Shown here one piece after another: positions 1,767-45,951 of a stretch of DNA of 64,000 nt. Origin of the DNA: Octopus bimaculoides. Taxonomy: Eukaryota. The stretch spans positions 24,494,944 through 24,558,943 of the forward strand of contig NC_068994.1 in NCBI RefSeq assembly GCF_001194135.2, written 5' to 3'. The stretch's first letter is position 1. Every line of letters starts with the position of its first letter. The notes beneath the pieces are model-generated. The model saw only the letters and a program-made list of their open reading frames with translations, was not told the DNA's origin and did not search any database. The translations under genes were made by a program, and so were the position numbers.

Positions 1767-2400
1767 ATGTCTCCTGCTAAAAGTAAAGGGCAAGGTCGGA
1801 AATCCAAAATGAAACTGAAACAACATAGTCAGTATTACCCTCAGAATCAACTATATGTTGATTCTCATGTCTATAAAAGAACTTCTAAAAAACAAAAATC
1901 ATCTGAATTTCATGATGAATGTATGGACCCTGCAACCTTAGAAGCTCATGTTGAAGCAGCCACAGCTGCTGCATCAGCTGCAGTTGCAGCAGAAATGGCT
2001 AATTCTAATCATTCAAATTTAAAGTCAAATGTGTATTCATCTTCAAAAACAGATACATCACCATCAAGATTACTTACATCTGAAGTTCCAATATTGCCTG
2101 ATGACTATCAAATGCAATCTTCTCCTAAAGGTGTAGATATTGGGCAAGTGAAGCAAGAGGACTTACAGTTGTTTCTTGAGTCTATTCCAGACTTTCATCA
2201 TGCTAATATTGTCAGAGGTGGTCGTTGTGTTAAATCAGGTTTTGTTCATGTTGTCAAAGGTGAAAATTACTTAAGAGATATATTTTATAACACAGCAACA
2301 ACTCCACAACGAAACATAATTGTTGTAAGAGAAACTCTTTATTGTAGTGGGCGTGGAAACTGTTTGCGTGCCTGTGGAGGTAGAGGACATTGTGTAGAAG
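1767..2400 (+). CDS. First coding exon of an uncharacterised ~430-aa protein (basic N-terminus, Ala tract, first half of a Cys/His-rich module)
   Basis: Uninterrupted 220-codon ORF with protein-like composition in otherwise ORF-poor DNA. In-frame TGA upstream at 1746. Strong donor GAAG|GTAAGT at 2400/2401 (phase 1). Candidate upstream acceptor TTTCTTTCAG at 1548-1549 would make 1550-1766 5'UTR. Confidence 0.85.
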
Positions 2401-2946
2401 GTAAGTTATATTTCATTGTTAAGCAATAAATGTTGTATCTAATTGCTTCAGTTTACCCTGTTCAATCTCTACCAAATTTGTTAAACCATTAAATATAGAA
2501 GCATCTCTTACTCCATTGTTAATTATAGCAAACAGTTACCATTAAATTGTATTTTCATAGCTATGTTGATGACATAGTTGTATTTGCCATACAGTAATGT
2601 TGTAAACTTGATAAAACTATATAACTTACTCTTTTTGCTTTATATAATAAATTGTGTTTTTTTAATTAAAAAACATACAATTTTTAATTATATAATCAGT
2701 TTATAATCAAATGTTATTGAATGACTTGATTAATATTCAAAAGGACCTTGAAACAATTGTAATTCATGTTTACTGCATTTCAGGAAGCAGATCATAATTT
2801 TGTTAAAAAACAAGGTTTAATTGTAACAAAATAAGTATCAAGGGAATTAATTTCAGCTTGTTTGAGATAAGATGGTAATCAGTGCAATAAACCAACAAAT
2901 TACCTATCCATTTTCTGTTAAATTAGTTCTGATCTCTGCTCCCCAC

Positions 2947-3014
<68 letters not shown>
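2947..3014. repeat. (CT)n(AT)n microsatellite running into an assembly gap (N 3015-3197)
   Basis: Direct reading of the sequence. Confidence 0.95.
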
Positions 3015-3197
3015 NNNNNNNNNNNNNNNNNNNNNNNNNNNNNNNNNNNNNNNNNNNNNNNNNNNNNNNNNNNNNNNNNNNNNNNNNNNNNNNNNNNNNN
3101 NNNNNNNNNNNNNNNNNNNNNNNNNNNNNNNNNNNNNNNNNNNNNNNNNNNNNNNNNNNNNNNNNNNNNNNNNNNNNNNNNNNNNNNNNNNNNNNNN

Positions 3198-3528
3198 TAC
3201 AGCTGGATGCCCTTCCTAACGCCAACCACTCAGAGAGTGTAGTGGGTGCTTTTACGTGTCACCCGCACGAAAACAGCCACGCTCGAAATGGTGTCTTTTA
3301 TGTGCCACCCGCACAAGCCAGTCCAGGGGCACTGGCAACGATCTCGCTCGAAAATCCTACGGGAGCCAGTCAGGCGGTACTGGCAACGGCCACGCTCAAA
3401 ATGGTGCATCTCATGTGCCACCCGCACAAGAACCAGTCCAGGGGCACTGGCAACGATCTTACTTGGCTTGCCGGGTCTTCTCACGCACAGCACATTACCA
3501 AAGGTCTCGGTCAGTAGTCATCGCCTAT
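3198..3528 (-). mobile_element. RTE-tail-related short retroposon (SINE-like) fragment with internal duplication
   Basis: Contains CTGGATGCCCTTCCTAACGCCAACCAC, shared with copies at 11262, 24716, 33336 and 40462. A ~57-bp segment occurs twice (3288-3343, 3401-3458). Confidence 0.6.
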
Positions 3529-4340
3529 ATTTATATATATATATAAATGAAGTAGTGCAGACTTTGTGTCTTGCTGAGAGTGTAGTCTAGTTTCAGAAAT
3601 GAAATACAAATTCATAACACTTCAGTCTTACACATTATCGCATGAAAACTATGATAATATACTTAAGTATATGCTTAAGTAATTCATGTCTTGAATCTAT
3701 GTTTACAAAATGCATCTCTGCTTCAGAATACAAGTTTGGTTAAATGTAAACTACTGGAATGGGGTTAGCTGATAGTTATATTTTGTATCTTGTATTTAAA
3801 TCAAAATCTAAAAAGTTAGTTAAAAGCTTTTGGTGGGAATAATACAGATCAAGGTTTAATAATGACTAGAAAATCTGTTGCTGACTTTCCCTGTTAGTTT
3901 AAATATGAAAGTTATCATTATCATTGATATCCTAATATGTGCTTTCATGTTCATTTTGTTTGCATAGATCTGCAGTACAGCATATCACTTACTAATACAG
4001 ACTTTTGTTACCTGCTCTCTGAAGTCCAGCATCTTAGGATCTGACCACACCTCTTTCCCTGTTTTACTCAGTCATCCTATTCTTCAAATATGCTCCATCC
4101 ACAGCACTTTTTGACTCAGTATTTATTACCAATTCACCTCACATGTCCATACAACCACAATCATCTTTCCCCATGTTGATGTATTTAATATCTAATTGTT
4201 CTCTCAAATACTTGTGCTCTGCCTTTCAGGCAAGATGACATTGCATTTTGTTGTGAGCAAAGTCACTTTCCAGGTGACAGTGGGTTTTTCTGTTCTCAGT
4301 TACTAATAAGTACTTTGATATTTGCTTTGCTAACTTTTAG

Positions 4341-4545
4341 CTCTTTAGCATTCAAATTACTCTACCAAATGTAAAGCTTATTTACTCATATTGCTTTGAA
4401 TTGAGCATAGCTTTGAGATTTCAATGGTGTTATCTATTTTTAGGGTGACATTGTAGGGTAGGTGTGAGAGACTAGACTTGGCCAGTTTGAACTTAAAACA
4501 AGGGGTATATTTGGGCCAGATATGGCCAGTTTAAATGCTAAAGGG
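4341..4545. mobile_element. piggyBac-like MITE
   Basis: 16-bp TIRs CTCTTTAGCATTCAAA / TTTAAATGCTAAAGGG (14/16). Flanked by TTAG (4337-4340) and TTAA (4546-4549), consistent with a decayed TTAA TSD. Confidence 0.6.
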
Positions 4546-6483
4546 TTAAGTTTAACTAGTCATGACCAAGGTTACTGAGCTAGGTTCCTGAATGTTCATC
4601 TAGATCAAATTTATGTTAAAGGGTTACTTTGTTGACAAAAGCAAAATGTTAAAAATTTCTATTATTTAGAAAAAAAAGTTAAATTATTTAACCCCTTGCA
4701 CATAAAATTCTAGGATCTGTAATATCTCATCTAAATAATGCAAATATGCTACACAAATATTATATGACCTCCTATAAGGAAAGAGGTAAACAAATAGATC
4801 TAAATAAATAACTGAAAATATAATTTATTAGTGATAGCCTTTACAAATTACTTAGCTGATTTCACTACATTAGACTCCCTACAATTTGAAATTAACAAGA
4901 TAAAAATGATTTGATAATATGAATGTATTAGAAATTGTTTTTGAAATAACTCTGTTTGAGATTTCTTGAGATAAACTTGTTTTGAATGATATCAGAAAGT
5001 TTGATATAAAACTATTTTGACCTCTTGTTTGGTAGGTATTTCCCTTAGTTTTAACAAAATATGCCTACATCTTATTTGAACATCGATATCTTTTTATCTT
5101 AAGTGTCCTTTATCAGTTTAATTTGTATTGCAGTTGATGAATCATTATTTACAGGTTTCCAGTAGGACAGTCATTGATCCACTGCATTTCCAATGGCAAC
5201 ATAAACAAGGAATGTTTAACTTGTAAAACAAATGTTACACGAGACTTTGCTCAGAGTCCAATTCATTTTATTTTGTTCTGTTGCTCATGTTTACTTCCTT
5301 TGCTGAGACAAATTGACAAAAGATATCATCATCACCTGACATCAATATTCCATGCTTGTATGGGTTGGATGATTTGGCAGAATCCAACGGATCAGAGAAC
5401 CATCTTTTGTCTTAGTTTTTAGTTGGTATCTTACTATGGAAATTTGCTTGTGAGCAAATTTTGTCTTTCTTTGCAAAGTATAAGTAACCTATCTTCAATT
5501 TAAAAAAATTCAATTTCATCTCAAAAACTCTGTATGCGCAATTTTTCCACTCTGTACTAGTTGTAAAACGTGCATGCACACAAGCACATGGCTTAGAGGG
5601 AATATTGGTGATGAGGTGTGAGAATGTATCCTCAAGGTAGAAGATGATTAGAAGAGAGAATGGGGACCGAAAGACAGAGCAGGCAAAGATTGCAAAAGTG
5701 TTAGGGGAAAGTGGGAAATGGTTAGAAATAAGGGTGGAATAAATGTAGTGAATGGTGAACAAGGGCAATAAATGGTAAATATAAGTAAGGGTTGAGTGAG
5801 AAAACTGAAGGATGTCAACAGAAGTGGTTCAGGGAAGTGGGGTGCTGGCTGGCAATACAGTAAGAGTAATAAGCTGCAGATTAATACAGTAGTTGGGGGA
5901 ACGGTGAATGGATGGGTGATGTGGAGATGAGGCTAAGTAAAAGTTGCAAGAATGTAAGGAAAAGTGAGAGACAAATAGAGATAGGTGTGACAATGGTCAG
6001 AGGTATATAAAGGCCCAAAGTGCCACACAGTGGGACTGAACCATGTCGTGGAGAAGGAAACTTCTTACCATACAGCCATGCCTGAAACAAACTTCAGTGT
6101 AGTTATACATAATGTTTAATTTGTGGTATCAAAATAAGACTGTTCATGATGAACAAAAATGCATTCAGTAGTAAATGCTACATGAAATAAGCAAATGTAA
6201 TATTCAAGAACAAAAATGTGTAATAAGTGAACAATCTGAAGTTTGGGTCAAGAATAGCATATCCATGTATCAACAGGATATATGGACACTCATGCATATA
6301 ATAATGTATATATAGACTTGCCTTACCACTTATATATGCATGCACATAAACAGATCAATATACTCATCAATATAACTGTACATGTATATGTAAAATCACA
6401 TACAGACATACTCTGGTATGTGGTTTCACGGTCCTCTTTAAATTCTAAATCCAATGTAGGAAAGGTTCCAAGTATGGTGTAAA

Positions 6484-6822
6484 ATAAGAACACAAATGGG
6501 TTTCAGATACGTGTTTTGTTGATGAACAAATCAATAACATCATGAAATGAAAACTATTTTCTTCATATGAATAAAAATTTAAATCTAAAATTTAAGATTC
6601 AGCTCATAATGGAGAAATAATTTTTCTTTTTCTGATCATCACAAAAATTATACTTATTATGAGCCTAATCTTAAATGTTAAATTTCAGGTTTAAATTTCT
6701 ATTCACCTTGAAGAAAATGTTTTTTTTTGTTTTTTTTCATGATGTAATTGATCTGTTCATCAATAAAAATAAAAACATGTCAGAAACAGTTGTAGTGAAC
6801 TTCAACCCATTTCTGTTCTTTT
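6484..6822. mobile_element. Fold-back (palindromic) MITE-like element
   Basis: The left half (AAGAACACAAATGGG...GATGAACAAATCAATAACATCATG...GCTCATAAT) is the gapped reverse complement of the right half (ATTATGAGCC...CATGATGTAATTGATCTGTTCATC...CCCATTTCTGTTCTT). Confidence 0.6.
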
Positions 6823-7355
6823 ATGTATATGTACATGTGTGTATGTGGGTACACATATTTGTGTTGTGTGTGTATATGTGTGTACACGTACACGTGTGTG
6901 TGTATGCATGAAAAGGTGATGATAGCTTTGTAACTTTCTGCTGCACTGAGGTTTGCATTCTTTTATCTCACTTAATGGACACAGTATCTTCCTGACTTTA
7001 ATGACCTTAAGAACACTAGCTTGGCTACAGCATGCCTGTGTTTCTTGTATGTCCACACAGTCAGTTTTGGATATAAAGTAATTAAGATAACTCTTTTGAA
7101 ATTTGAGTAGTTTCATCTCTTTGCTTCTTGCATGCCTGTTATAGCCGCTCCTAATTTCCCTATAAATTCAAATATAATTTTTTAAAATACCACTTATCCA
7201 GAAATGTTGGTTCAATTTGTCAAGATATTATATTTGTACTTGTTTAACATTTTACCTGAAGATGGTAGATTATGTGCTATGATGTAGTCTATGAATAATC
7301 TATAAAATTCTACCAAAACAGCTGTTGCAAATTTTAAACCCCATTTGTGTTCCTT

Positions 7356-7356
<1 letters not shown>

Positions 7357-7386
<30 letters not shown>

Positions 7387-7395
7387 GAATATATG

Positions 7396-7469
<74 letters not shown>

Positions 7470-7546
7470 CATATATACACACACACGTGTATATACACAC
7501 ACACACAAATATGTGTACCTACATACACACATGTACATATACATAT
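7357..7546. repeat. (AT)n / (AC)n compound microsatellite
   Basis: Direct reading. Confidence 0.95.
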
Positions 7547-7637
7547 AAGAACAGAAATGGGTTGAGGTTCACTACAACTGTTTCAGACATGTTTTTATTT
7601 TTATTGATGAACAAATATATATATTTACCACATGTAG

Positions 7638-7711
7638 TTTATTTTTCTCTTTGAAACCTATTTCTATTATATATATATATAATAGAAATAGGTTTCAAAG
7701 AGAAAAATAAA
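7638..7711. repeat. Perfect 74-bp palindrome centred on (TA)n
   Basis: Arms TTTATTTTTCTCTTTGAAACCTATTTCTATTA and TAATAGAAATAGGTTTCAAAGAGAAAAATAAA are exact reverse complements. Confidence 0.9.
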
Positions 7712-8088
7712 GTAAGAAGAAAAAGCGAAAATGCACATTGGATATTTAAAAAATAAAGGCTTTTTTATGAAAAGTAACGATAAATATATACAGTTAGATG
7801 AACTGAGGTAGAATTAAGAGGAATAAAGTTATTATTTTGAATTGTTAAAGGAATTCAAAGTCATACCGATTTCATCAATTGCTGTTCACTGGCTTTCAAT
7901 GCACACTGATTACCAAATGGTGTTGTGTCTACTAGTCCCTGAATAAAAAGATTATATGTAAGGGAGGTAAGTAGTTCTGGGAGTGGTGCAATTAGGGTAG
8001 ATGTAATAATGTAATATGAATGGTGTATAGAATGTATGGGAATTAGTGGTATTAATGGTAGGGTTAGTAGTGTTCTATGTTATATGTT

Positions 8089-8530
8089 CACGTTGAGTTG
8101 TGGATGATATTTATTGATGAAAGTTGCTTCTTTATTTCTTTGCTGAACTGAGGTATTCTGTGAACATTGATATAAAGGGAAAATTTGGAAGTTCCTAGCA
8201 CACCTTTCTATGTGTTCACTGACCTGTAACTGTCTGTATTGTGGGTAGTGGATTTGTTCCTTGTGAAGAGTTGTTCTTTAATGGAGTGACATTCCTGTTT
8301 GGCCAATATAATGATTATCGCACCCTAAGCAGGTAATGGCATAGATTAAGTTTTCCAAAGCACAGGTGAAATTTGATTTTATCTTAAATATTTCACTTTG
8401 TTTAAAGTGGAACTCTGTACCCTCCAAAAGGTGGGGGCATGTACCACAATTAGGCTGACCACATTTTTTCACTTTCGGTTCCATTGTTAATGGATATAGT
8501 CTTGCATTGGTTAATATTTTTTCAATGATT
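8089..8530 (-). mobile_element. Penelope-like element remnant (GIY-YIG endonuclease region)
   Basis: KKCGQPNCGTCP...FKIKSNFTCALENLIYAITCLGCDNHYIGQTG...H...INKYHPQLN matches the CxxxxCxxC / IYxIxCxxC / YIGQT pattern of PLE GIY-YIG domains. Stops and frameshift present. Confidence 0.8.
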
Positions 8531-8631
8531 TCGGTTGCATTTTGCTCTTGATAATTTTGTGTGAGTCTAAAATTTTGTTCATGTATGTATGTATGTATGC
8601 ATGCATGTATGTATAAAATTAATTTACAAAG

Positions 8632-9065
8632 GTACCGTTAATTCTATTATTATCCAATGTCACTAGTTTAAGAATGATAATAACAGAATTAACGATACAG
8701 GCGGCTGCAGGCCAAAAAATGGCATTTAAATAGCCGAGGAATTATAATTAATCAAAGGACATACTAAGTATGTCTACCTGCTTGAAATAACAGTCAAAAC
8801 TCGTTATTAAATCGTCAAAACTACACTGGTGATTACTACAGAAATCAAACGAAGGTAAATTTGGTTAAGACAATCTACTTACATACATTCAAGTATATGG
8901 ATTTATGTGGACTAGTTTCTGCATTGGCACAAAATGCCTTAGCTTCTTCAGCACATATCACCACCAAAGCGATTTCCAACCTATCCTTCTGAAATCTGTG
9001 CCGCTACTGATTTGTTTCGCGCCGAAATCACAGCAGCTTCCCAGTGTAAAAAATAATCTCGTTGC
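8632..9065. repeat. Older copy of the ~455-bp repeat unit seen at 62.2-63.4 kb, preceded by a 23-bp-arm hairpin
   Basis: Shares ATTAATCAAAGGACATACTAAGTATGTCTACCTGC..GAAATAACAG and ACTACAGAAATCAA with 62600-62710 and 63200-63300. Arms 8632-8654 / 8676-8698 match 21/23. Confidence 0.7.
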
Positions 9066-9094
9066 CGATATATCTATATAACTGATGACGAGGA

Positions 9095-9388
9095 TTCCAG
9101 TTGATCTGATCAATGGAACATCCTGCTCATGAAATTAACATGCAAGTGGCTGAGCACTCCACAGACACATGTTACCTCAACTTAGTTCTCAGGGAGATTC
9201 AGTGTGACATGGAATGTGACAAGGTTGGCCCTTTAAGATACAGGTACTACTCAGTTTTGCCAGCTGAGTGAACTGGTGCAACATAAAATAAAGTGTCTTG
9301 TTCACAGACGTTATGTGCTGCTGTGAACTAAACTCATGACCTTATGGTCATGAACAGAATATCCTAACCACTAAGTTATGCACCCTTA
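9095..9388 (-). mobile_element. tRNA-headed SINE (decayed)
   Basis: The minus strand begins with A-box-like TAGTGGTTAG and a decayed B-box-like segment, followed by a body shared with 53780-53968. Confidence 0.5.
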
Positions 9389-10251
9389 CATCATTGAGCT
9401 TGGCCATTGGTCAGTTCATGAGAAATTTCCTAACAGTGTCTGTTCACAAGGCCAAGCTTATGGAGATGCCTATTAATGGTGCTTTGTGAGGATCAAGTTC
9501 TGCTAACAATGTACAAGTGCCTCTGCTTGGCTGTTGTTTAACTTTTTCAAGCAAAGCTTCATCATCCACAACAGATGATCTGCCTGACCTTGGTTTGTCT
9601 GAACCAGTTTTGTGTCACACGTTTGTTGACAGTTCCTGAGCCTTCTACATCATTAATTTCTTTTGCCACTGCCCTTGTACTCAGTCCTTTTTCCACAGGT
9701 AGCGTAAAATGGCAATTTATTCAGCACAGAATAAATAATTCATGTTCATGTGTTAAACATAAAAATAAAGAATAAACAATTCAGCAATGGTAGGATAAGT
9801 TGTATCAAATTGATGATGTAACATGAAGATGCAAGTTGCCAAAAATCATCAGAGAAAATCTGAAAAGATTTTTGCTCAACCTGGTATATATAAAGACATA
9901 TACAGACAAGTACTAATACATACATCTGCACATACATATATACACAAATTATACATTCAAAAAATATTGTTATATATCTCTATGCATTAACGTGTGTGTG
10001 TATAAATGTGTGACAGTATGGCATACTAGTTTGAGTGTTCAGCTTATAATCAAAATATCATGGAGTCATTTCCTGTTTCCAACGCATTGTGTTCTTGAGC
10101 AAAATATTTTATTTCATGGTGTTCCAGTTTCCTCAGCTGAAAGTGTATACTAGTCAAATGCTGAAGCAGTTCTCTCTGTCTAACTATCCTGAATGTGCTG
10201 TTTGGTCAAAGAGTGGGAGAGGTAAAAGTTGTATTTTTATATGTACATATA

Positions 10252-10590
10252 CAGGGTACCCTTAACAAATGTGTACACACATTGAATGATTATAAAGTCA
10301 GTGTTTATTAAAATGCATTTTATCAAAAGGTAATAGAATCTACAAGAATAATTTTTTTCATTTTATGAATGCCTGTTTTTCAACTGATGACTGTTCTGGC
10401 CCAGATACTGCAGATAATGCAGAGCAACAGAATAGCAAACATCAAGAAACATTTCCAGTGGACACAGAGTATTTTTACTGAACCCGTTTGGCAAATTATT
10501 ATCAAGTTAAACCTTTACATTACTATGGTATGTAGCGAGGTCCCCATCTTACTGAAAATATAACTCCACATCTTAAAATCCTCTTGAGTG
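10252..10590 (-). mobile_element. Tc1/mariner transposon 3' remnant
   Basis: TA|CAGGGTACCC... terminus. The minus strand reads FQ*DGDLATYHSNVKV*LDNNLPNG, resembling the catalytic FQQDGAPPHY..VR.YLD..LP motif. Confidence 0.55.
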
Positions 10591-11261
10591 CTTGACATAA
10601 CATATAGTTGCAGTAAATGGAGTAAATGGGACTAGTCACAGTATCATCAAAACAGATTGATCCAATTAATCCTTTTTTTTTTTTTTTCGTTTTTTAAGCC
10701 ACACCAGTTTGGCAACAGACTAATAGAATAATTTCCAGACTTTAAAAATAAGTACTGGGGGTGATTTGTTTGACAAAACCATTTAGTGTCCCAGCATGGC
10801 CACTGTCTAATTCCTGAAACATGTAGAAGATGAAAGATAGAGATATATTTATATATGATGTTTAACAGTATTTTTCTATAATTCTGCTACTTATCAAGTA
10901 CAGCATTTTTTTATTGTCTCTCTGGAAATTTGCAGAGAAATATCCATTATGTTGATGAATTTTTTTTTTCTTCAGAAGGTGAATGATTCTGTACCTTGTT
11001 AAAAACATTCAGTAACTTCCTGCACAGCATAAAAAAAAAAAGTAATCTGTGTGATATTATTTCAGTTCATACTATTCATTATTAACATGAAATTAGAAGG
11101 CATGACGAAAAGTTTTTGAGTTTCGCTCAATGATACGGATGTAAAGTATTCTGAATGAACACTCCTATAGAATGGAGTTGAAACTATCAAAAGAATCAAA
11201 AACCATTTTCTTTGGGTGTGTAGTTTTATGGATCTTAGATTGTGATTAAGCAAATATCATT

Positions 11262-11600
11262 GTCATCATCATCATCGTTTAACATCCGCCTTCCATGCTG
11301 GCATGGGTGGGACAGTTTGACAAGAGCCAGCCAGGCAGAAACCTGCACTAGACTTCTGTAATTGTTTTGGCGGGATTTTTACAACTGGCTGCCCTTCCTA
11401 ACACCAACCACTCATCAGAGTGGACTTACTGCTTTTTACATAGCACAAGCACTAGCAAGGTCAGTTTTGACAAGGTTTTTGCAGTTGGATGTCCTTCCAA
11501 ACACCAACCACTTTACAGTGTGGACTGCATGCTTTTAAGTGGCACCTACACTGACAGGATCACCAAGTACTTGCAAGATAAAAAAATAAAACTCTTTTGA
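11262..11600 (-). mobile_element. RTE-tail-related SINE-like element
   Basis: (CAT)n followed by CGTTTAACATCCGCCTTCCATGCTGGCATGGG; family shared across the window. Confidence 0.65.
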
Positions 11601-12519
11601 GAGGTCAGGGGGCATTGGAGGAGGTGATTTTTTGTTGGATGATAAAAGGTTATAGTGAGGCAGAGAGATTCCCAAAGTGGGTGATGAATTTCTAGAAAAT
11701 GGTGGTTGATTTGAGATTTGAGCAGGCAATATGAACATTTTGTGGGTGACAATGAATTTTTAGAAATTAAGTCTGCATTTACTGATATCTAGGCATGCCT
11801 AGAATAAGGATGCATTTTTATCAATTTGACTATTTGTATTAAAAACGTGGACTTGTTTATCGATCAAATATTTTTGTCACAGACTTTGAGATGGTTGTCA
11901 TGCATGCTAAAAATAGCAGCCAAATAGGCCTAGGCCTTAAATCACACTCCACCACAAATTTTTTGGAGGTGGGGCATAGTCATATAAAGTCCCACGTGTT
12001 GAATTCAAAATCTCAAAAATTTCCCGAAAACTTTGAAAAATAAAAAAGTTAGGAGTTATATGTTGTGCATAATTCTGTGGTNNNNNNNNNNNNNNNNNNN
12101 NNNNNNNNNNNNNNNNNNNNNNNNNNNNNNNNNNNNNNNNNNNNNNNNNNNNNNNNNNNNNNNNNNNNNNNNNNNNNNNNNNNNNNNNNNNNNNNNNNNN
12201 NNNNNNNNNNNNNNNNNNNNNNNNNNNNNNNNNNNNNNNNNNNNNNNNNNNNNNNNNNNNNNNNNNNNNNNNNNNNCAGCAATTTAACTTGGAAAGGTAC
12301 ATTAATGTGCTGAATTTTTAAATTTTCAATAAACTTTGATTTTTGAAATGCTGGCAGCCAAACAAACTAGATCCGTATTTGCTCCAGTAAAGACGTGTCA
12401 TCTAACTCTGCTCTATTGACTTCTTCTTCTCTTTGGGAATACCATACTGCCTTTCTGATGCCATCTGTAGAAATTCATTTCCACCTTTCCATTTTACTGA
12501 TGCCTCCAGTCGAGAAAAT

Positions 12520-14618: not shown

Positions 14619-15004
14619 CTGTAGAGGAAGTACAAAGTTACCCAGCCAGGGAGAGAGATCAAGAATGAAGACAGTAAGAGGTGCGCTGCCACAAAGGAAA
14701 TACATGGTTACTCAGCCTGAGGGAAGTGCAGGAGAAAGAGAGAGAGAGTGGGAGACAGCAGGATAGAGATGGTGACAAAGTGCCAGGCATACACAATGAT
14801 ACAGTGAGACAGGATGTGGGTGGAACACACAGGTCGCAAACTAGCAGAAAGCAATGATACAGTGGCACAGGGCCAAGAGGACAGGAGTGAGGAGTGGGAA
14901 GTAAGCCTAATGCATGAAGTGGAAATGTGAGGAAGAGAAGAGATGTAGTTTGGTTTGTTGTGGTAGAGTATGTGAGAAATTTTCTATTTAAGTGTAGGTG
15001 GGAC

Positions 15005-16008
15005 ACAGCACTTCTAGCATTCAGTTTTGCTGATGTGAGCAGGTCTTCTCAAGAACTTCATATCGCTAGACATCTCCGTCCATTGTCATTTCTTCCGTGA
15101 AGCCCAGCATACTGAGATCAGCCCTTATCACTTAATCCTACTTCTTCTTAGGTTTCTCTCTTCTGCAGGTACCATCTACTTTCATATGCTTCACATCCAA
15201 ACCAATGTAGTCTTCTCTCTTGCATGCTACATTTGGTTCCTCTTATGCCCAACTTTTCTCTCAATACATTTGCACTTTGTCACACATGTACACTGATGTT
15301 GCACATCCAACTGAGAATACTACCTTCATTTCTCTCCAGTCTACACGTCTTCTGCATTCAAAGCCCATGTCTCACTACCATGGAGTATAGCCATTCGCAC
15401 AAACATCATAAAGTCTACCTTTTACTCTGAGAGAAAGTCCTTTTGTTGCCTATAGAGGTAGCTCTCTAAACTTCCTCCACCCAATTCTTATTCTAGAAAC
15501 AATACTTTCAGAGCATCCTCCACCATTGCTAATTTGGTCACCTAGGTAACAGAAACTATCTACAACCTCAAGAGAGCCTCTTAAGTTCTGTGTGCTCTTA
15601 GTGCTTATTGTTCCTGCACATCTGCCATATAGAAAGGCAACTTTATTTGTTAACCTACTTGTTATTTCACTGCAACTCTTATGTGTCCATAGTTTACACT
15701 GGGTGCAGCAAATGGAATTTCTTCCATCTCCTTTCCTACATATTTAACAGGGCCATTTACCTGACAGAAAGAGAGTTTTAACAACAACTTTGGTCTTTGC
15801 TAAGTTAACTTTAAGGCCCTTTGATTCCAAGTTTTTGTTTCCATACCTGGAATTTTTTCTCCAATTCTGCTAAAGTTTCTGCAATAAGATCAAGGTCATC
15901 AGCATATAGCATTTCCTATGGGCACCCAGTTTTGAATTCTGTTATGACCTGGAGGACTATAATGAATGAGAGTAGGCTGAGAACTGAGCTCTGGTAAACC
16001 CCAAGCTG
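15005..16008 (-). mobile_element. RTE-clade LINE fragment (RT C-terminal half)
   Basis: Frameshifted equivalent of GVHQGSVLSPLLF...GCPWELLYADD...ESKGLKVN.AKT on the minus strand; homologous to 34.5-35.6 kb and 37.2-38.3 kb. Confidence 0.7.
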
Positions 16009-16013
16009 TATGC

Positions 16014-17489
16014 TATGGTACTGTTACTACATGTTTCTCCTAGCGAGAAATATGTAGTAACAGTACCATACAGTACAGCTTATTTGCTAATGCAACGTCA
16101 CAGTCCTGCGCAGAATGATGTTACTACTTGTTAACCCCAAAAAAACATCTTTTCCAGCTGGCTACCAACACATGATCTGCATCCGTATACTGTGAGAAAG
16201 GCAGTCTACTGCTCCCTTTCTAGCCATAACGATACCTTTAGACCAATTTTTTCTGGGTAATTTCCCTTCCTTGGTACAGGACAACTGCCAGCTAGAGTTA
16301 GCAGTCAATCACTCTTACTCACAGTATATAATTTTAAAGTAATACAACAGTTACTGATCAATAAAGAGAAAATGACTAGTTTTAAATCTCTGAACGAGAA
16401 ATATGTAGTAACTGTACCATACAGTAAAGTCTATTTGCCAATGCAATGTGCTAGTCCTACACGGGATGATGTTCCTACTTTTTAGCCCCAGGAAAACATC
16501 TTTTTCAGTTGGCTACTGACACATGATCTTTGTATACTGTGAGCAAGGGTGTCTTCCGCTCCCTTTCTAGCCACAGCCATACCTGTAGACCAACTTTTTC
16601 TGGGTAATTTCCCTTACTCGGTACAGGACAACTGCCAGCTAGAGATAGCAGCCACTCCCTTGCTCACAGTATATACTGTGAGCAAGGGAGTATACCGCTC
16701 CCTTTCTAGCCACAGCCATACTTGGAAATACTTGTAAAGTGACACACAGCCACTAATCTTGTGAAGAGAAAAACAACTAGTTTCAAATCTCTGGGCTAGA
16801 AATGTGCAGTAACTGTATCATACAGTAAAGTCTGTTTGCCAATGCAACACGCCAATCATACGCAGGATGATGTTACTACTTTTTAACCCGAGGAAAACAT
16901 CTTTTCCAGCTGGCTACCAGCATATGATCTGTGTCTGCATACTGTGAGCAAAGTGGTCTACTGCTCACTTTCTAACCACAGCTATACCTGTAGACCAATG
17001 GTTTCTGGTCAATTTCCCTTACTCAGTACAGAACAATCACTGGCTAGAGATAGCAGTCACTTGCTCTTGCTTATACTATATACATTTAAAGCAACACACA
17101 GTCGCTGATGTTGTAATGAGAAAAACAAACTAGTATCAAATCTCTGAGCGAGAAATATGTAGTAACAGTCCCGTACAGTAAAGTCTATTTGCTAACGTAA
17201 TGTGGTAGTTCTGCACAGGAGGATGTTACTACTTTATAGCTTCGGAAAAACATCTTTTCCAGCTGGCTACCAACACATCTTCTGTGTTTGTATACTGTGA
17301 GCAATGGAGTCTACCACTCCCTTTCTAGCCAAAGCGATACCTGTAGACCAATGGTTTCTGAGTAATTTCCCTTACTCGGTACAGGACAACCGCTGGCTAG
17401 AGACAGCAGTTACTCACTCTTGCTCACAGTATATACTTTGAGCAGGGGAGTATACCACTCCCTTTCTAGCCATAGCCATACCTGTAAAC
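16014..17489. repeat. Tandem array of ~350-bp units (4 copies), left block
   Basis: Marker GAGAAATATGTAGTAAC recurs at ~16045, 16396, 16797 and 17150. The array begins with an inverted 26-bp fold-back (16014-16039 vs 16045-16070). Confidence 0.9.
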
Positions 17490-20400
17490 CAGTGATTTTC
17501 AACCAGTGTGCCACGGTATACAGGTGTGCTGTGAGATCTTCCTAAGTGTGCCGCGAAATTTTGAATGACACATTAAGAAAATGCGAAAAACCACGTGATC
17601 CCAATCAAGTATTCACAGTCTGTGGTATAACATGTTGCACCACATAGCTTTGTTCATTTAGAGATAAGTGAAATGTTTCCAAATGTCACAATACTAAAAT
17701 TTCTATATCTTTTATTGTTTCATTTGTCATTAGTATTGATCATATGAATGGATATTGGTTAATACTTGTCTTAAGTTGGGACACACCCCACACCCCCAAA
17801 AGAAAAAAATTTATATCATGCATCTTTTTTCCACTTTTATGGTAGAATCTACCTCTAAAACTGAGACAAATGATATATTTCTTTTTCCTCTGGTCCTAAT
17901 TTTTGCTGAGACATGACCAAAAATGGTTGAAAAATAGCGTAATTTTCAGAATTCTTTTGAGAAAATCCAAATAAGCTATGAAGGTGGTTTTTACATTTTT
18001 TAGAATCTGATAACCCGTCATTGTATAGTAACAAAAGCCTTTTTTTTTTTTTTTTTTGATATTTTGGGAAAAAAAAATTTATTGTCATTAGTGGATGGAC
18101 AATAAAAAAAACTGAAAAAAATCACATTTTTTTTTTTTATAAAAATGACTAACATTTTTTCAAGGCAGAATTTTTTTTAAAGGCTTCTGTCATGATGAAG
18201 CTACTATTATGAGGAAGGTCTCCTCAAAATTTCAAGCAAATCTATTGAGTAGATTTTTTGGAAAGAGCTTTGAACTTTTGATAAGTACCCATTTTGAGAA
18301 AATTACCTGTACAGAATTGAAACACAAATGTCAGCTTCTACCTCTGTTTCAGAACAATCTGTGGATGATTCCAATGATTTAGCTCAGAATTCTCTGGTTC
18401 ATGCTACTTAATAAGTCTATGTTAGCTTCCTTTTACTCATATTTTGTCTTGCTTCATCTCTATATGCCATAATTTCCTAATTTTTGGGTGGATTATCGCA
18501 TTGGAAGAGTGAATTTGGCCGCCATGTTTACATTGTGATGGTGGACTGTGTGGTCATGTGATGTACTGGACCAATCAGCGGGCACCATTTACCGAGTGTA
18601 GCTGCAAAGGAGGCTCAGTGTGCATTTGCTTGTTCAATATGGGCCAATTTTCAAGCTTTTTACACCAGTGAGTTCTAGTGTTTCATCACCTTATGCTAAT
18701 GAGGGTATAGTAGAGGTCTATAGCTGTTTACTGGTGCATGGAACATAGCATAAATGGTGGATTTACGATGTGTTGTCAGTGTGCTAAGATTGACTATTTT
18801 TGTGTGTAATGCATCGAAAATTGATGATTTCCAGCTAGACATGGTTTCATAAAACATCTGTTTTAGGTTGGAAGACATATTTTTATTGTTTTGCTGTGTT
18901 TGTGCATGAAAGAGAAAACTTTGTGGGACCAACAGACACTGTCATCTCAATATAGACAATCCTACCCAAAACTGTCATAGTGATATTTCATCACCCTTCA
19001 CAATGGATAAATATTTGAAAAGGAAAAATATTAATGATGAGTCCAGAGGCGAACAATCATCAACCTCTATTGTCAAAAAAGAGAAACATTAATCAACAAT
19101 ATTGTGAAAATTATTTGAAATTTGGATTTTATTGGCCTGGTGATGTTGACATACAAATCCATCATGCATAGTGTGCAGTGAAACAATGTCAAAAGAATCC
19201 AATGTACCAAGTAAATTAGAAAGACATTTTAACTCAAAACATTTATCTCTGAAAGATAAAAAGCTTGATTACTTTCAAAGACTGTTAGAGCAGAAATCAA
19301 AATAGTGAAGTTATTTTGAAAAAATAATGATCTTGTCTGAACTAGCCCAACTAGCATCAATTCAGGTGGCTGAAATAAAAGCATCAACATCTGAATCCCA
19401 CATGCTTGCTGAGTCAGTCATCCTCCCAGCTTGCAAAAAGATGGTAAAATCCATGTTTGGTGAAAAAGCTGAAAAGGAATTGAACAATATTCCGCTTTCA
19501 AATGATACAATACATTGAAGAATTCTGTTGAAAAATATTGAAGACAATGTTCAGAAAAAGCTTAAGAATTCAAATTTTGCTTTAACCTTGAATGAATCCA
19601 TTGACATCAGTAATAATAGTCAATTGCTTGCATTTGTATGTTTTATTGATGAGAATGAAATAATCAATTTTTGTGCTGTAAAGAAATGTCCACAACTACA
19701 AGAGGTCAAGATATTTTTGATTTGATAACAGGTTACCTCAAAGAAATGAATTTGTCTTGGAAGTCTTGTGTTGGCATTTGCACCAATGGAGCTCCCATAC
19801 ATGACAGGCTGTATTACAGGATTTGTATCCTTCATAGAGAAAGAAAATCCAAATCTCATTCATACTTATCGCTTTCTATATAGAGAAGTTCTTGTTTCAA
19901 AAATATTGCAGGAAGATTTAAAGGTTTTGTTATATCAAGTTGTTGGAATGGTCAGTTATATAAAAAGTAGGCCATTGAAGTCATGATTATTTGAACAACT
20001 GTGCAAAGAGATGGACTGTCAGCATGTTAAGTTGTTAATGCACACTGAGGTTCACTGGCTGTCGAAAGGCAAAGTACTAAATCGTGTTCACGAACTTCAC
20101 AAGGAATTACTATCATTTTCTCTCAAGGAAAAGCAGGAGAAATTCTGTGAATACCTTAGTTGTGAATTTTGGATGTCTAAAATGGAATACCTAACAGAAA
20201 TATTTAGTGAACTAAATAAAACAAACAGTAGAATGCAAGGTAAAAATGAAAATATTCTGACTTCAACTTGCCTTCAAAAAGAAAATTGTGATTTGGGAAA
20301 AAAAGAGCAATCACTGGTAATTTTGATATGTTACCTTTATTGCATTCTACCTGCTTTAGAGAAATGATCCCTATTGTGTTTACTCATCTGACAGCCCTGG

Positions 20401-20993
20401 ACGAAAGCATCAACAATTACTTTCTGAAATTAAAGACAGAAAAGTATGGGATTAGAGATCCTTTCATTAATCATTCTTCCAACATAGAACTTGATTTACA
20501 GGAAGAAGAAGAATTGGCCACCTTCTAGTGACCGAGGGTTAAAATTAAAACATTTGAGTCTGCCCATTGATTCATTTTGGATTTCAATTCAAGAGGAGTA
20601 TCACATATTCTGTAAAAGAGCTTTCGCAATTTCATTACAATTTTCAACTTCTTACATATGTAAATTAGGCTTCTCAACATTAAACAACATCGAAAACAAG
20701 AAGCGCAAGAAATTGCGTACAACAGAAGAAGAAATGAGGGTGTATCTGTCTCATATTCAACCAAGCATTGAGGAAATTATGAATAAAAGCCAGGCACAAA
20801 TTTCTCACTAAAGAAGCCAGCTATTTAACTGATGAAATTTGAAACACTGCAATAAAGTAAGTTCATAGCTGTGTTTTTGAGTCATTCTGTGTGTCTCTGA
20901 CTAGTCTGTGTCTACAGTTATATGCTGTCTATGACTTGCAATGTTCTTATTTTGCAAAATTCAAATATTTTTCGTATATTTAGTTAGGTGTGC
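17490..20993 (+). mobile_element. Second decayed Buster/Charlie-type hAT transposon, inserted into the tandem array
   Basis: Left TIR CAGTGATTTTCAACC preceded by CTGTAAAC. Transposase remnants from ATG 19003 (YLKFGF..., IPLSNDTI, HTEVHWLSKG, FSTSYICKLGFS...QAQISH, stop 20811). Right TIR absent. Confidence 0.9.
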
Positions 20994-21009
20994 CTTTATT
21001 TTCCCAGGG

Positions 21010-22070
21010 AAATTTCCCTTCCTCGGTACAGGATAACAGTACCTGGCTAAGGATAACAGTTACTCGCTTTTGGTCACATCATATACATTTAAAGCGACAC
21101 ACAGTCACTAATCTTGTAAAGAGAAAAACAACTGGTATTAAATCTCTGAGCAAGAAATATGTAGTAACAGTACAGTAAAGTATATTTGCCAATGCAACAT
21201 GGCACTCCTGCGCAGGATGATGTTCCTACTTTTTCGCCCCAGGAAAACGTCTTTTCCCTCTGGCTACCAACACATAATCTGTGTCTGTACACTGTGAGCA
21301 AAGGAGTCTACCGCTCCCTTTCTACCTGTAGTTTCTGGGTAATTTCCCTTCCTCAGTATAGGACAACCACCAGCTAGAAATAGCAGTCATTCACTCTTGT
21401 CAGTATATACTTTTAATGTGACAATTAGTTTTAAATCTCTGAGTGAGAAATATGCAGTAACAGTACCATACAGCAAAGTCAATTTGCCATTACAATGTCG
21501 CAGTCCTATACAGGACGATGTTACATTTTAGCCCCAGGAAAACATCTTTTCCACTGGCTACTGATACATGATCTATGTCCATATACTGTGCACATGGGCA
21601 TCTACCGCTTCCTTTCTTTTTGTAGCAATACCTGTAGACCAATGGTTTTGGGGTAATTTCCCTTCCTCAGTACAGGACAAATGCCTGCTAGAGATAGCAG
21701 TCACTTGTTCTTGCTCAGTGACACACAGTCGCTGATCTTGTAATGAGTAAAACAACTAGTTTTAAATCTCTGAGCGAGAAATATGTAGTAACAGTACCAT
21801 ACAGTAAATTCTATTTGCCATTGCAATGTGGCAGTCCTGCGCAGGACAATTTGGAAGTTGTCCCATACCAAAGAAGGAAAATTACCCAGAAGCCATTGGT
21901 CTACAGGTATCACTACAGCTAGAAAGGGGATGGTAGCCTCCCTAGCTCACAGTGTATGGACATAGATTTTGTGTTGGTGCTGGCAAGAAAAGGTGTTTTC
22001 TTAGGGCTAAAAAGTAGTAATAACGTTCTGCATATGACTGTCATGTTGCGTTAGCAAATAGATTTTACTA
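21010..22070. repeat. Tandem array of the same ~350-bp unit, right block, ending in an inverted ~215-bp copy
   Basis: Marker at ~21152, 21445 and 21776. 21855-22070 is the reverse complement of part of the unit. Confidence 0.9.
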
Positions 22071-22299
22071 TATATATGTACATGTATATTTATATATATA
22101 TATATAATTATTATGGAGTGGTTTTTGCGCTTCCACCCTTTTTCTGTAATTTTTTACTTTCTCTTGAAAATTTTTCAGGTTCGTGTCTTATACATTTGAA
22201 ACGTTTTCAAAAAAAAATCTAAAAGCTGGAAAACTGGGATGGGGGATAGTAGGACAACAGTTATTTTTTCATTTTTATTTTTGTTTGTGATTGTGCATG

Positions 22300-23400
22300 T
22301 AAGAGGGGAGTGGAAACACCAAGTGCTGGATTATGGTATCCCCTGGGAGCAGGATTTTTGTGTTGTAATCCATGTTTTCTGCCACTGCTGTTGACTTAGA
22401 TATTGATATTTTGTGGTGCTGTTGCTGTTGTCTCCACATTATTGCTGAAATGAGTTAATGCTATTGTTGATGTTGGTATGGATGTTGTTATTGTTTTTCC
22501 TCATTTACCCTTACTGCTGTTGCTTATGCCTTACTTGTCACATGTCATTGTTATGGTGTCAGCAGCAGGATAGCCATTTCCACTCCCACTCCACCTTTTC
22601 TGTTTTCATTGTTTGGTAAGTAGGCTATCAGATGGTTGATTCTTCCACACAGTGGCATCTCAGCCTTCTACAGTTACTTGCAGCTCTGTCCCTTTCAGCA
22701 GAGAGATGAGACGTGGAATCTTTTCCAGATGTTCAGGATTTTTTGGAGAAAAACCTCTAGTATAGTCTCAAACTAGTTTTTCCTGCTTGTTCTCTTTCTG
22801 TCCAACAGGGTATCATTTCCCTCCAACACTCTGCAAGTTAGGATCCACTAGAGACCCAGCTTTGGTAGGACATCCTGTATTGTTAACCTCATTGTCCTTT
22901 CCAAATAGGTAGGGAAGAGAACAGTCATCACTGTGGTGGGTAATTACTGAGTGTTGAATTGCCTTACATTGGACTTACTCCGTGCAGAACTGCCTTACCC
23001 TCGGTATATGTTGGATATATGTTGCTATACATTATGGAGGGCTGTTCCAATGTGTGTTTGTCGTTGTCTCCTTTTGAATGATACTGTGACGATATTTTAC
23101 TGTCTTTCTAGCAGTTACAGCTTGAGTTTCAGGTTGGAGGTATAAGAGCTGTCCTTTTTCCTGCAATTATCTTAAATAAAGTGATGCCTTCAAGTTTGGT
23201 TCTCTTGTCCTCTAGGGAGAGACTATATGGCTCCTCCTGGAAAAATGACCTTGTTTCTTTTGCTGTTGGTATTATTGTTTTATTGTTGGTGATGTTATTG
23301 CTGTTGTTGTTGCTTCCATCACTGATGTCATTGTTGTCATTACCATTGTTGAAATTGTTGCTGCTGCTGCATTGTTTATCTGCCTCTTGCATGTCAAAAT
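22300..23400 (-). mobile_element. Possible decayed gag-like ORF1 of a non-LTR retrotransposon (L1/Tx1-like)
   Basis: Minus strand IPRLISLLKGTELQVTVEG followed, after a frameshift, by MPLCGRINHLIAYLP, resembling a VTVEGRxPxC..GH...CP zinc knuckle. Highly degraded. Confidence 0.4.
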
Positions 23401-23439
23401 ATGCATGTAGTGACTATATGCACTTATGTATTTATGCAT

Positions 23440-23720
23440 GGTTACACTTATGTATATTCATAAGTGCAGTCATGTGGTTTTGGGTTCAGGCTCACTATGC
23501 AGCACATAGGGCAAGTGTCTTCTACTATAGTCCCAGCCTAACTAAGGCCTTGTGAGTGAATTCAGTGGTCAGAAAACTGTATAGAAGTCCATCATATATA
23601 TGTACATGTGTTTTTAGTTGTCCCTTCACCACTTGACAACTAGTGTTGGTTTGTTTATATCCCCATAACTTAGTGGTTTGGCAAAAGAGACTAGTACGAT
23701 AGGAACCAAACTTAAAAGTA
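23440..23720 (+). mobile_element. tRNA-headed SINE family A, partial copy
   Basis: GGGCAAGTGTCTTCTACTATAG...GCCTTGTGAGTG...AAACTG..AGAAG.CC core shared with 40627-41016. Confidence 0.7.
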
Positions 23721-24248
23721 TGTAACAGGAGCAAACTGAAACCTGATTGAGGAGAAGGAAAGTAGAAGATAGAGTAAATGAAATACCACTAAAAGGATAG
23801 TCGTTGCATGGTTTGCAAATTATTGGGAGAGTAATTTAGGCTTTTATATGTATTCTATAACATATAAATAATGTATTAACAATATAAAATAAATGGAACA
23901 CTCAGGATACATCATAGTAACAGAAATAATGGATCTGATTGAAATAGTTTAGTATTATGATGAGATAGTGAAAGATAGCAGAAAATTAGAACTTACATAC
24001 CTTATAAGGTGAGTGACCAATAATATAAAGTAGATAAGGTTAAATATCATCACCATTCTTGTCTTAACATCACTTTTCCTTTCTGGTATGTATCAGACAA
24101 AAGTTATTGATGCAAATTTTCTTTGGCCCAATGCTCCTCCTGTCAAAAACCATCACCTGTCTATTTGTCTGAATGTCTGTCTATCTACCCAGCTATATGT
24201 TTGTCACACTTTCTCTCTCTGAATATTTGTCTCTATCTATCCATTTAG

Positions 24249-24535
24249 GCTGTACCAGAAAATCAGAAAGAGTAACTGGTGGACATTCATGTTTTTTTCA
24301 AGTGAAACTGTCCATGTATTCTGCATCCATCGGAACATGGAGGGTAAAAGTACAAGGCAGTCACAATGGACCAGTAGACTCCTGGAAGAACTCAATCAAC
24401 CATAAAGATGAAGTGGGTAACAGAAATCTGGATTTTTTTAATCTTGATGCTACTCATTCTGTTAACAGTTCTGGAAATGACTTGATAACTTCACAAACAG
24501 ATGCTATCACAGAATCTGTATACTTGAAATCTGAT
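24249..24535 (+). CDS. Coding exon 2 of the same gene (CTRKSERVTGGHSCFFQVKLSMYSASIGTWRVKVQGSH...YLKSD)
   Basis: Pyrimidine-rich acceptor ending CCATTTAG|GC (phase 1, completes a Gly codon with exon 1). Open frame. Donor GAT|GTAAGT at 24535/24536 (phase 0). The Cys pattern continues across the splice. Confidence 0.8.
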
Positions 24536-24715
24536 GTAAGTTAATCAGAACTTTTTGCTTTTTATTTTAAGTAAATATAAACCATGAGAGCAGGAACCTG
24601 ACATATTTATGTCTGGAATATCAGTAAATATATTTTATTCTATAGCTAAAAGTGTATGGTATAATAACAGCTAATATCTTGAATATATTTCACTACTTCA
24701 TTTAATATGTTAATC

Positions 24716-26648: not shown

Positions 26649-26865
26649 TGTAAACCTGTAACTCAAGGTATATTGAATCACGACATTGATAGTGTTGTTA
26701 ATAGTGTTGGCAATGGTGATAACATGCAAAACTGCAAAACTGAAGTTCAGCATACCAATGATAGCAGCTATCAATCGACTTGTGATGGCAGCTGCCAATC
26801 AGAACTCAAGAAGTTACGCCAAGAGAATACATCTTTAAAATTAGAGATCCTACAGTTACGACATG
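26649..26865 (+). CDS. Coding exon 3 (CKPVTQG...QSELKKLRQENTSLKLEILQLRH; coiled-coil start)
   Basis: Acceptor CATTTCAG|TGT (phase 0). Open frame with heptad-like Leu spacing. Donor CATG|GTAAAA at 26865/26866 (phase 1). Confidence 0.75.
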
Positions 26866-27440: not shown

Positions 27441-27555
27441 CAGCTGATGGATTTAAACTTTTGGAAGATCTGAAAGAATTGATTGAGAAGTATGAAACAA
27501 ATGATAGTTTACCAACTACTCCCACATCACCTGCAATGTATTTGATGAAGGTGAA
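27441..27555 (+). CDS. Coding exon 4 (AADGFKLLEDLKELIEKYETNDSLPTTPTSPAMYLMKV)
   Basis: Long poly-T/C tract then TAG|CAG acceptor (phase 1). Open frame. Donor AA|GTAAGT at 27555/27556 (phase 2). Confidence 0.75.
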
Positions 27556-45911: not shown

Positions 45912-45951
45912 GAATCGGGATAATGAATATGTGACTATCACACAACCTTGA
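45912..45951 (+). CDS. Probable terminal coding exon (K-NRDNEYVTITQP-stop)
   Basis: Acceptor TTTTCTTTTGCTTTCAG|G. Phase 2 completes AAG with exon 4. TGA at 45949-45951. Short exon, so support rests on the splice signal and phase only. Confidence 0.55.

Follow-up and report, generated by a model that had tools for sequence, protein, structure and literature searches.

A conserved Cys/His-containing domain of an octopus gene and its likely link to a Mutator-like transposase

Domains of the WRKY-GCM1 superfamily share a four-stranded core with a Cys dyad around the loop between strands 2 and 3 and a C-terminal HxH or HxC motif; inserts occur between the two core Cys, with a zinc ribbon at this place in GCM1, and in the MULE/FAR1 type an N-terminal helix is present and strand 4 carries a Trp (Babu et al. 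2006, PMC1702500). Among animal factors derived from transposons, one survey distinguished six families, of which FHY3 was represented by one gene in octopus (PMC10027918). Here, we describe a domain encoded by LOC106869118, an uncharacterized gene of Octopus bimaculoides, which lies in a 64,000-nucleotide stretch of contig NC_068994.1 (hereafter, the window). We propose that it is an undescribed zinc domain, namely a transposase-derived DNA-binding module that was domesticated in octopus, and we assign this proposal a probability of roughly 60%.

The preliminary description of the window, made from its sequence, singled out a Cys/His-rich module. Its count of six Cys and three His in a spliced segment of 61 residues is correct, and the module is real and conserved, but the alignment of relatives places it as the C-terminal half of a larger unit, a basic domain of ~135 aa (residues 124-256), and not as the whole. 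Residues 124-256 contain seven Cys, and residues 1-123 contain one. Queried with residues 121-275, HMMER revealed 63 relatives among 1.84 billion representative proteins (E ≤ 0.001; E < 1e-10 for 15 relatives), and a profile search of a word-indexed protein database returned 13 proteins. The relatives with a named source come from cephalopods, including two further octopus paralogues, from gastropods (Pomacea, Biomphalaria, Aplysia, Elysia, and Gigantopelta) and bivalves (Mytilus, Mya, Dreissena, and Sinanodonta), and, outside the molluscs, from amphioxus, the hemichordate Ptychodera, and the sea urchin Diadema; they are labelled either as uncharacterized or with the name of a fused enzyme. 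No Pfam family covers the domain region in the octopus protein, ten full-length relatives, or 33 domain sequences (E ≤ 10), and we found no Pfam family, solved structure, or paper that describes the domain. Judged by these sequences, the domain represents an undescribed, strongly conserved family of marine invertebrates (molluscs, amphioxus, hemichordates, and echinoderms).

The alignment of 33 complete or C-terminal domain copies, with a mean column identity of 31%, contains twelve invariant columns (C70, G72, C76, R78, C80, G81, G84, C86, C90, C103, G125, and H127; adding 123 converts an alignment column to the protein numbering) and two nearly invariant ones (D48 and H101). The candidate ligands are thus C193, C199, C203, C209, C213, H224, C226, and H250. 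Specifically, all six Cys of the segment and H250 are invariant and H224 is nearly so, but His208, the third His counted in the preliminary description, is not conserved. At such a low mean identity, the conservation of the six Cys and two His is far beyond chance. W242 is conserved in at least 90% of the sequences. The net charge is positive in each of the 33 domains (median +10, median isoelectric point 9.4), and several Lys/Arg columns are conserved, including the invariant R78. Between O. bimaculoides and O. sinensis, the ratio of nonsynonymous to synonymous substitution rates amounts to 0.31 for residues 1-307 as a whole but to 0.18 for the domain, where purifying selection is strongest.

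AlphaFold2, run on the family alignment, places both exon halves in one model with a mean predicted local distance difference test (pLDDT) score of 88.1 and a predicted template modelling (TM) score of 0.79; pLDDT reaches 94-98 over the exon 1 part of the domain (aa 124-212). The model consists of a strand, two helices, four strands, the last of which ends in C193, a 32-residue loop, and two strands (among them, in model residue numbers, strands E62-70, E106-112, and E118-124, and helices 7-15 and 18-22). The four insert Cys sit in the 32-residue loop, and W242 sits in the final strand. The eight conserved Cys/His residues suffice for two metal ions, most likely zinc given the intracellular context of the domain. 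One zinc would be held in a knuckle-like Cys4 insert by C199, C203, C209, and C213, which keep the spacing C-x3-C-x5-C-x3-C across the family, while C193, at the end of its strand, would share the other with the H224-x-C226 dyad and with H250, which follows the last strand. The two-metal variant envisaged in the preliminary description therefore agrees with the eight conserved ligands, but the assignment of this variant to the WRKY/GCM families is not supported.

The domain is encoded by two exons on either side of a long first intron. As the preliminary description had claimed, joining exon 1 to exon 2 yields exactly the peptide that it quoted. The first 20 residues, CSGRGNCLRACGGRGHCVE(G), are read from 2343 on the plus strand, and the rest, (G)CTRKSER...GSHNGP, from 24249-24373; the start of the interval given earlier, 2343-24370, is thus right, but its end lies one codon short of the final Pro. 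Exon 1 opens with an ATG at 1767, its donor AAG/GTAAGT (2400/2401) and the acceptor CCATTTAG/GC (24248/24249) make a canonical GT-AG pair, and the phase-1 join restores Gly212 (...HCVEG-CTRK...). The spliced product of 307 residues is 100% identical to XP_014770149.1 (O. bimaculoides LOC106869118) and 93% identical to its orthologues in O. sinensis and O. vulgaris, both of which are unbroken across the junction. Furthermore, the RefSeq isoforms X1, X2, and X3 were rebuilt residue for residue from five exons of the window, all with canonical GT-AG ends; a NAGNAG acceptor and two alternative donors of exon 4 account for the three isoforms. Use of the donor at 27550 puts the last exon in a frame that ends in ESG and the stop. 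Past the domain, low-complexity sequence in the octopus protein gives way to a Leu-rich segment of heptad-like character, SELKKLRQENTSLKLEILQLRH (aa 358-379), which may be a dimerizing coiled coil; a Leu-rich C-terminal segment is kept in P0009, the closest relative. The Pfam scan detected no enzyme domain in the octopus protein.

The window is AT-rich animal DNA with six runs of N, two of which (3015-3197 and 12082-12276) fall within intron 1 (2401-24248), so that the reading frame across them is not at issue. The public chromosome record, GCA_001194135.2 (CM046614.1), represents the same assembly and contains identical gaps. In O. sinensis, the locus is free of gaps and contains the same pair of exons, separated by an intron of 12 kb. 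The first gap is flanked on both sides by blocks collinear with O. sinensis, and the second lies inside a stretch of 12 kb (7418-19476) that is missing from the O. sinensis locus and has collinear blocks on either side. This stretch, probably a lineage-specific transposon insertion, explains most of the excess length of the intron over that of O. sinensis (21.8 kb versus 12 kb); it holds debris of open reading frames (ORFs) at 12395-14188 and a weak match to a Spin-doc zinc finger (E 0.0023). P0009, the closest relative outside the genus, has two tandem copies of the domain (residues 103-235 and 299-431) in ORFs of 598 aa on assembled contigs of 2.1-2.3 kb, which we infer to be spliced transcripts, and both copies are unbroken at the junction. 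The position of intron 1 is common to the octopus, Mytilus, Dreissena, and Diadema relatives. Since the junction is kept in O. sinensis, O. vulgaris, and P0009, the join of exon 1 to exon 2 is sound.

The bivalve relatives likely link the domain, as far as their sequences tell, to the core of a Mutator-like transposase (MULE). P0030, a Mytilus protein labelled as gephyrin, contains past the domain a stretch that resembles the first catalytic motif of Mutator-like transposases, and a search with this protein identified eleven relatives (P0111-P0121) from Dreissena, Mytilus edulis, and other contigs. In the longer of these proteins that retain it, the C-terminal half of the domain is in frame with a conserved linker, followed by DDE-like motifs (GIDGKHGLQDDGA ... 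MIDKFEAS..AC ... LCWFH.VKA) with a conserved D...D pattern. The Pfam family MULE (PF10551) is the only family listed, in three of ten proteins (E 0.0047, 0.045, and 0.063), with the halves of the model matched collinearly; with the consensus of the family, after removal of a 31-aa Cys/His insert, the match extends over profile positions 1-98/99 (E 6.2e-4, 20.6 bits). On a Dreissena chromosome, 4 kb of a single strand accommodate both domain halves and the DDE-like region, with one frameshift, and the domain halves are split by an intron at the octopus position, which is also where the Mytilus copy is spliced. The association with a Mutator-like core is therefore likely in bivalves, at scores below the gathering threshold. 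Because the domain precedes the MULE-like core in these proteins, it is most likely a transposase-derived DNA-binding module.

In Dreissena polymorpha (CM035924.1), the overlapping gene models LOC127847213 and DPMN_184135 belong to one locus (L004 8325-12099) that comprises the domain and the MULE-like region; the frameshift lies near 10122-10137, and 1 kb of sequence interrupts the locus ahead of the second DDE motif. Another Dreissena locus, DPMN_066373, shows 87-95% identity to it.

In other relatives, the domain is joined to host enzymes. Many of them start with a MoCF_biosynth (gephyrin G) domain, which Pfam confirms for the Diadema protein; the latter is predicted to consist of the G domain, the new domain, and a MoeA (E) domain. 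In the Diadema antillarum locus (L005), the domain exons, 9349-10629 and 11325-11699, are located between the gephyrin G and E exons and are split at the conserved intron position. This arrangement resembles an ancient and conserved capture within the gephyrin gene, and we found no paper on the association of gephyrin with such a domain. Proteins with gephyrin G and the domain occur in molluscs and a hemichordate (P0022, P0024, P0026, P0028, P0031, P0035, P0036, P0040, P0041, P0056, and P0059). The domain is N-terminal to PUS3 in Biomphalaria glabrata (P0019) and Mya arenaria (P0053). Fragments of the PUS3 subfamily are P0025, P0027, P0032, P0043, P0047-P0049, P0051, and P0062, and the exon 1 part of this subfamily is ~90% identical across many assemblies.

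The preliminary description fitted the segment to the WRKY/GCM/FAR1 skeleton. The layout matches this skeleton in several respects, but no sequence, profile, or structure search supports a link. As in superfamily members with an insert, 32 residues separate C193 from C226 (range 20-70), W242 is positioned in strand E118-124, and helices lie near the N-terminus; the Cys dyad is also rightly placed, with C193 at the end of a strand and C226 just before the next. After the last strand, only one conserved His is found (G-x-H250), and the positions that follow vary. The earlier remark that the last His is lacking was correct and can be extended, as the HxH/HxC dyad is absent from the whole family and not from the octopus protein alone; H224 could serve as a substitute fourth ligand. 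The extra CxxxC-x5-CxxxC insert noted earlier holds four invariant Cys within 32 residues, but the His that it contains, His208, is not conserved.

Pfam scans (E ≤ 10) of the octopus protein, 33 family members, their consensus, and nine sequences with the insert deleted revealed no WRKY, FAR1, GCM, or FLYWCH match, and those of the insert-deleted sequences and the consensus revealed no other zinc family. Searches of the PDB with a single domain (phmmer) and with the profile (hmmsearch) likewise gave no WRKY, GCM, FAR1, or FLYWCH match. For the membership suggested in the preliminary description, a Foldseek search of the AlphaFold model against the PDB produced no match with E < 0.5 and no significant link to WRKY or GCM; its list includes one WRKY chain, 5w3x_D, in 19th place (E 2.4, probability 0.12, TM-scores 0.24/0.43, root-mean-square deviation 10 Å). 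A trimmed-core model (pLDDT 84) retrieved no WRKY or GCM chain from the PDB, and the whole-domain model retrieved nothing significant from BFVD. Alignments with hhalign to WRKY4, GCMa, FAR1, and FHY3 gave probabilities of at most 1%, with comparator profiles that are too shallow for a real test. As to GCM itself, there is no match to PF03615, 1ODH is absent from the Foldseek results, and the Cys4 insert is spaced like a knuckle; the domain may work like GCM, though it is not a member. Since homology lacks statistical support, we do not file the domain as a member of WRKY-GCM1, and we regard the resemblance as one of layout.

We propose the following origin and function. The domain would be the DNA-binding module of a Mutator-like transposase lineage, and the octopus gene would have kept this module alone, together with a C-terminal Leu-rich helix. 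The octopus protein would then be a domesticated nuclear DNA-binding regulator, possibly dimeric through the C-terminal helix, and its DNA binding would be sequence-specific, in the manner of N-terminal transposase zinc domains. We infer the identity of the metal (zinc), the way in which the ligands are partitioned, DNA as the bound partner, and dimerization. The domesticated transposase that the preliminary description had suggested is plausible in the light of bivalve copies in frame with a MULE-like DDE core, but several observations weigh on the other side. All MULE matches fall below the Pfam gathering score (27.6 bits), the Dreissena copy is frameshifted, the Mytilus copy breaks off after the first motif, and an inverted-repeat scan around the Dreissena copy revealed no flanking terminal repeats. 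An hhalign comparison with FAR1/FHY3 cores found nothing, with comparator profiles far too shallow for a real test. Moreover, the fusions to PUS3, a tRNA enzyme, and to gephyrin G also fit binding of RNA or protein, and transfer could have run in the reverse direction, with a host domain captured by an element.

This reverse direction leads to an alternative in which the domain was born in the host as an RNA- or protein-binding domain with gephyrin and PUS3 as its ancestral contexts, and was acquired later by the MULE-like proteins of bivalves. The gephyrin-linked form in molluscs, a hemichordate, and a sea urchin and the PUS3-linked form in gastropods and a bivalve point to old host contexts, the shared phase-1 intron fits the origin in a host gene, the MULE-linked form is seen only in bivalves and further unassigned contigs, and the basic charge suits RNA as well as DNA. 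Nevertheless, we consider a host origin unlikely: in Diadema the domain occupies two large exons between the gephyrin G and E exons, like a captured insertion, a zinc domain followed by a DDE core is the standard layout of a transposase (PMC1702500), and the octopus protein is without an enzyme domain. Another alternative is that the domain is a divergent but true member of WRKY-GCM1, of the insert-containing MULE/FAR1 type with a GCM1-like insert, in which H224 replaces the lost His. Such membership would be a sharper version of the transposase-derived explanation and not a contradiction of it. The order of a strand-end Cys, a 32-residue insert, Cys, a Trp in the last strand, His, and a helix is that described for the superfamily (PMC1702500), the N-terminal place in a MULE-like protein is that of WRKY-GCM1 domains, and one WRKY chain, 5w3x_D, occurs in the Foldseek list at rank 19. 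Set against this are the lack of significant similarity by Pfam, PDB searches, Foldseek, or hhalign, the family-wide loss of the HxH/HxC dyad, the three strands that precede the Cys-bearing strand, and a first strand without a WRKY-like Trp, and we entertain true membership only tentatively. A fold that is itself new is a fair possibility. A broader scenario, possible but doubtful in our estimation, combines a structurally new two-metal DNA-binding fold, which would constitute a further class of Mutator-like DNA-binding domains, with its capture in early bilaterians by at least three host contexts, namely isoforms with the gephyrin G domain, PUS3, and coiled-coil factors that stand alone, like the octopus gene, and its later loss in vertebrates and ecdysozoans.

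Two further explanations concern the Cys residues and the gene model. The conserved Cys could instead coordinate an iron-sulfur (Fe-S) cluster or be paired in disulfides, as they are in EGF-like and other Cys-rich modules outside the cell: C-x3-C-x5-C-x3-C could ligate a cluster, two members gave very weak matches to Fe-S families (E 2.3 and 2.6), and the CSGRGxC motif resembles the spacing of EGF-type modules. This is very improbable, as two His are conserved alongside the six Cys, giving 4+4 ligands, and the only sequence resemblance in the PDB, although not significant, is to a CCHC zinc knuckle. A secreted EGF-like module was rejected, since the N-terminus, MSPAKSKGQGRKSK..., is basic and by eye without a hydrophobic stretch, no signal peptide is apparent, and the domain is fused to cytosolic enzymes. 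The idea that the domain is an artefact, produced by a false splice across gaps or by a chimeric scaffold that joins unrelated exons, draws on the two gaps of estimated length between the exons, the second within sequence that has no O. sinensis counterpart. It is effectively refuted, and its remaining probability is negligible: the same junction is found in the gapless O. sinensis locus, the O. vulgaris protein, and the P0009 ORFs, the intron has the same position in three other phyla or classes, and AlphaFold2 folds both exon halves into one confident domain.

Table 1. Features of LOC106869118 in the window (positions counted from the first letter of the window; splice sites marked by a slash)
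Feature	Position	Strand	Remarks
Coding exon 1	1767..2400	+	aa 1-211 and first base of Gly212; basic, disordered-looking N-terminus and N-terminal part of the domain
Domain, part 1	2136..2400	+	aa 124-212; predicted strand, two helices, four strands, then first four conserved Cys
Codons of C193; C199; C203; C209	2343-2345; 2361-2363; 2373-2375; 2391-2393	+	
Intron 1	2401..24248	+	21.8 kb, phase 1, GT...AG; contains both N gaps and repeat/transposon debris
Coding exon 2	24249..24535	+	aa 212-307; acceptor CCATTTAG/G, donor GAT/GTAAGT
Domain, part 2	24249..24382	+	aa 212-256; two predicted strands, remaining conserved ligands
Codons of C213; H224-x-C226; W242; G-x-H250	24251-24253; 24284-24292; 24338-24340; 24362-24364	+	
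Coding exon 3	26649..26865	+	ends in SELKKLRQENTSLKLEILQLRH (26799-26864)
Coding exon 4	27441..27555	+	NAGNAG acceptor at 27441 or 27444; donors at 27550 or 27555 (GT)
Last coding exon with stop	45912..45951	+	stop of isoform X3 at 45923

Several repeats and element remnants are located elsewhere in the window. Intron 4 contains a broken Helitron at 42723-45635 (+), with matches to Helitron_like_N (E 7.5e-45), PIF1 helicase (E 7.1e-32), and pieces of Pif1 2B; the pieces lie in separate ORFs and are interrupted by an N gap at 44106-44209. The same intron contains fragmented reverse-transcriptase ORFs at 30114-32645 (+) and 38345-39762 (-), with weak RVT_1 matches, and an ORF with a C2H2 zinc finger at 32265-32645, which are probably the remains of a retroelement of the long interspersed nuclear element (LINE) type. 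In intron 1, internal repeats at 16036-17488 and 21005-22048 match themselves and, at an offset, the O. sinensis intron (L003 11235-12969) with 70-81% identity, and could be a tandem or satellite-like array common to both species. A short interspersed repeat of ~190 bp, of which copies lie at 3198-3337, 11254-11455, and 24696-24936, has many matches of 72-78% identity in the O. sinensis locus, and one of its copies adjoins the first gap of intron 1.

If the proposed reading is true, a family of DNA-binding domains is invisible to current domain libraries, and the octopus gains at least three uncharacterized candidate regulators (LOC106869118, LOC106879828, and the orthologue of LOC115226066). 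As the octopus gene is without a Pfam match, a survey of catalogued families (PMC10027918) would probably not list it. The old, unexplained association with gephyrin and PUS3, both housekeeping genes, across several phyla would offer a case for studies of how transposase modules are captured. Should the fold prove to be WRKY-GCM1-like, the domain would join GCM as the second case in animals of this fold with a metal-binding insert.

Among known systems, the insert-containing WRKY-GCM1 domains of MULE, FAR1, and FHY3 proteins (PMC1702500) resemble the new domain in their position N-terminal to a Mutator-like DDE core and in the succession of a strand-end Cys, an insert of 20-70 residues, a second Cys, a last-strand Trp followed by His, a helix, and a basic surface. 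They differ from it in having HxH/HxC where the new domain has one C-terminal His, and they share no detectable sequence, profile, or Foldseek similarity with it. The new domain is further distinguished by the four invariant Cys of its insert, by the three strands before the Cys-bearing strand, and by its distribution, so far restricted to marine invertebrates. GCM (1ODH) offers a parallel of another kind, in that both domains are animal-specific and, by prediction for ours, bind two metals through eight ligands, with a Cys4 module between the two core Cys of a beta-sheet site; however, the insert of GCM is a zinc ribbon with other spacing, and neither sequence nor Foldseek matches it to the new domain. 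To our knowledge, GCM in animals has no link to a DDE core.

The CCHC zinc knuckle (C-x2-C-x4-H-x4-C) is approached by the octopus insert, C-x3-C-G-G-x-G-H-x4-C, whose spacing is near that of a knuckle, and the best sequence resemblance in the PDB is to the TUT7 knuckle, although it is not significant (E ~1). Neither the exact spacing nor a conserved His is found, however: the His of the knuckle corresponds to His208 in octopus, which is not conserved in the family, whereas the neighbouring Cys is. Finally, domesticated and host-fused transposase domains (FHY3/FAR1 in plants; ZBED, THAP, and FLYWCH in animals; PMC10027918) are similar in that an N-terminal zinc domain is kept without its core, as in octopus, or is spliced to host exons, as with gephyrin G and PUS3. 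The new domain stands apart from them as one outside the catalogued families, and its gephyrin-linked form is common to molluscs and ambulacrarians and is therefore old and not specific to one lineage.

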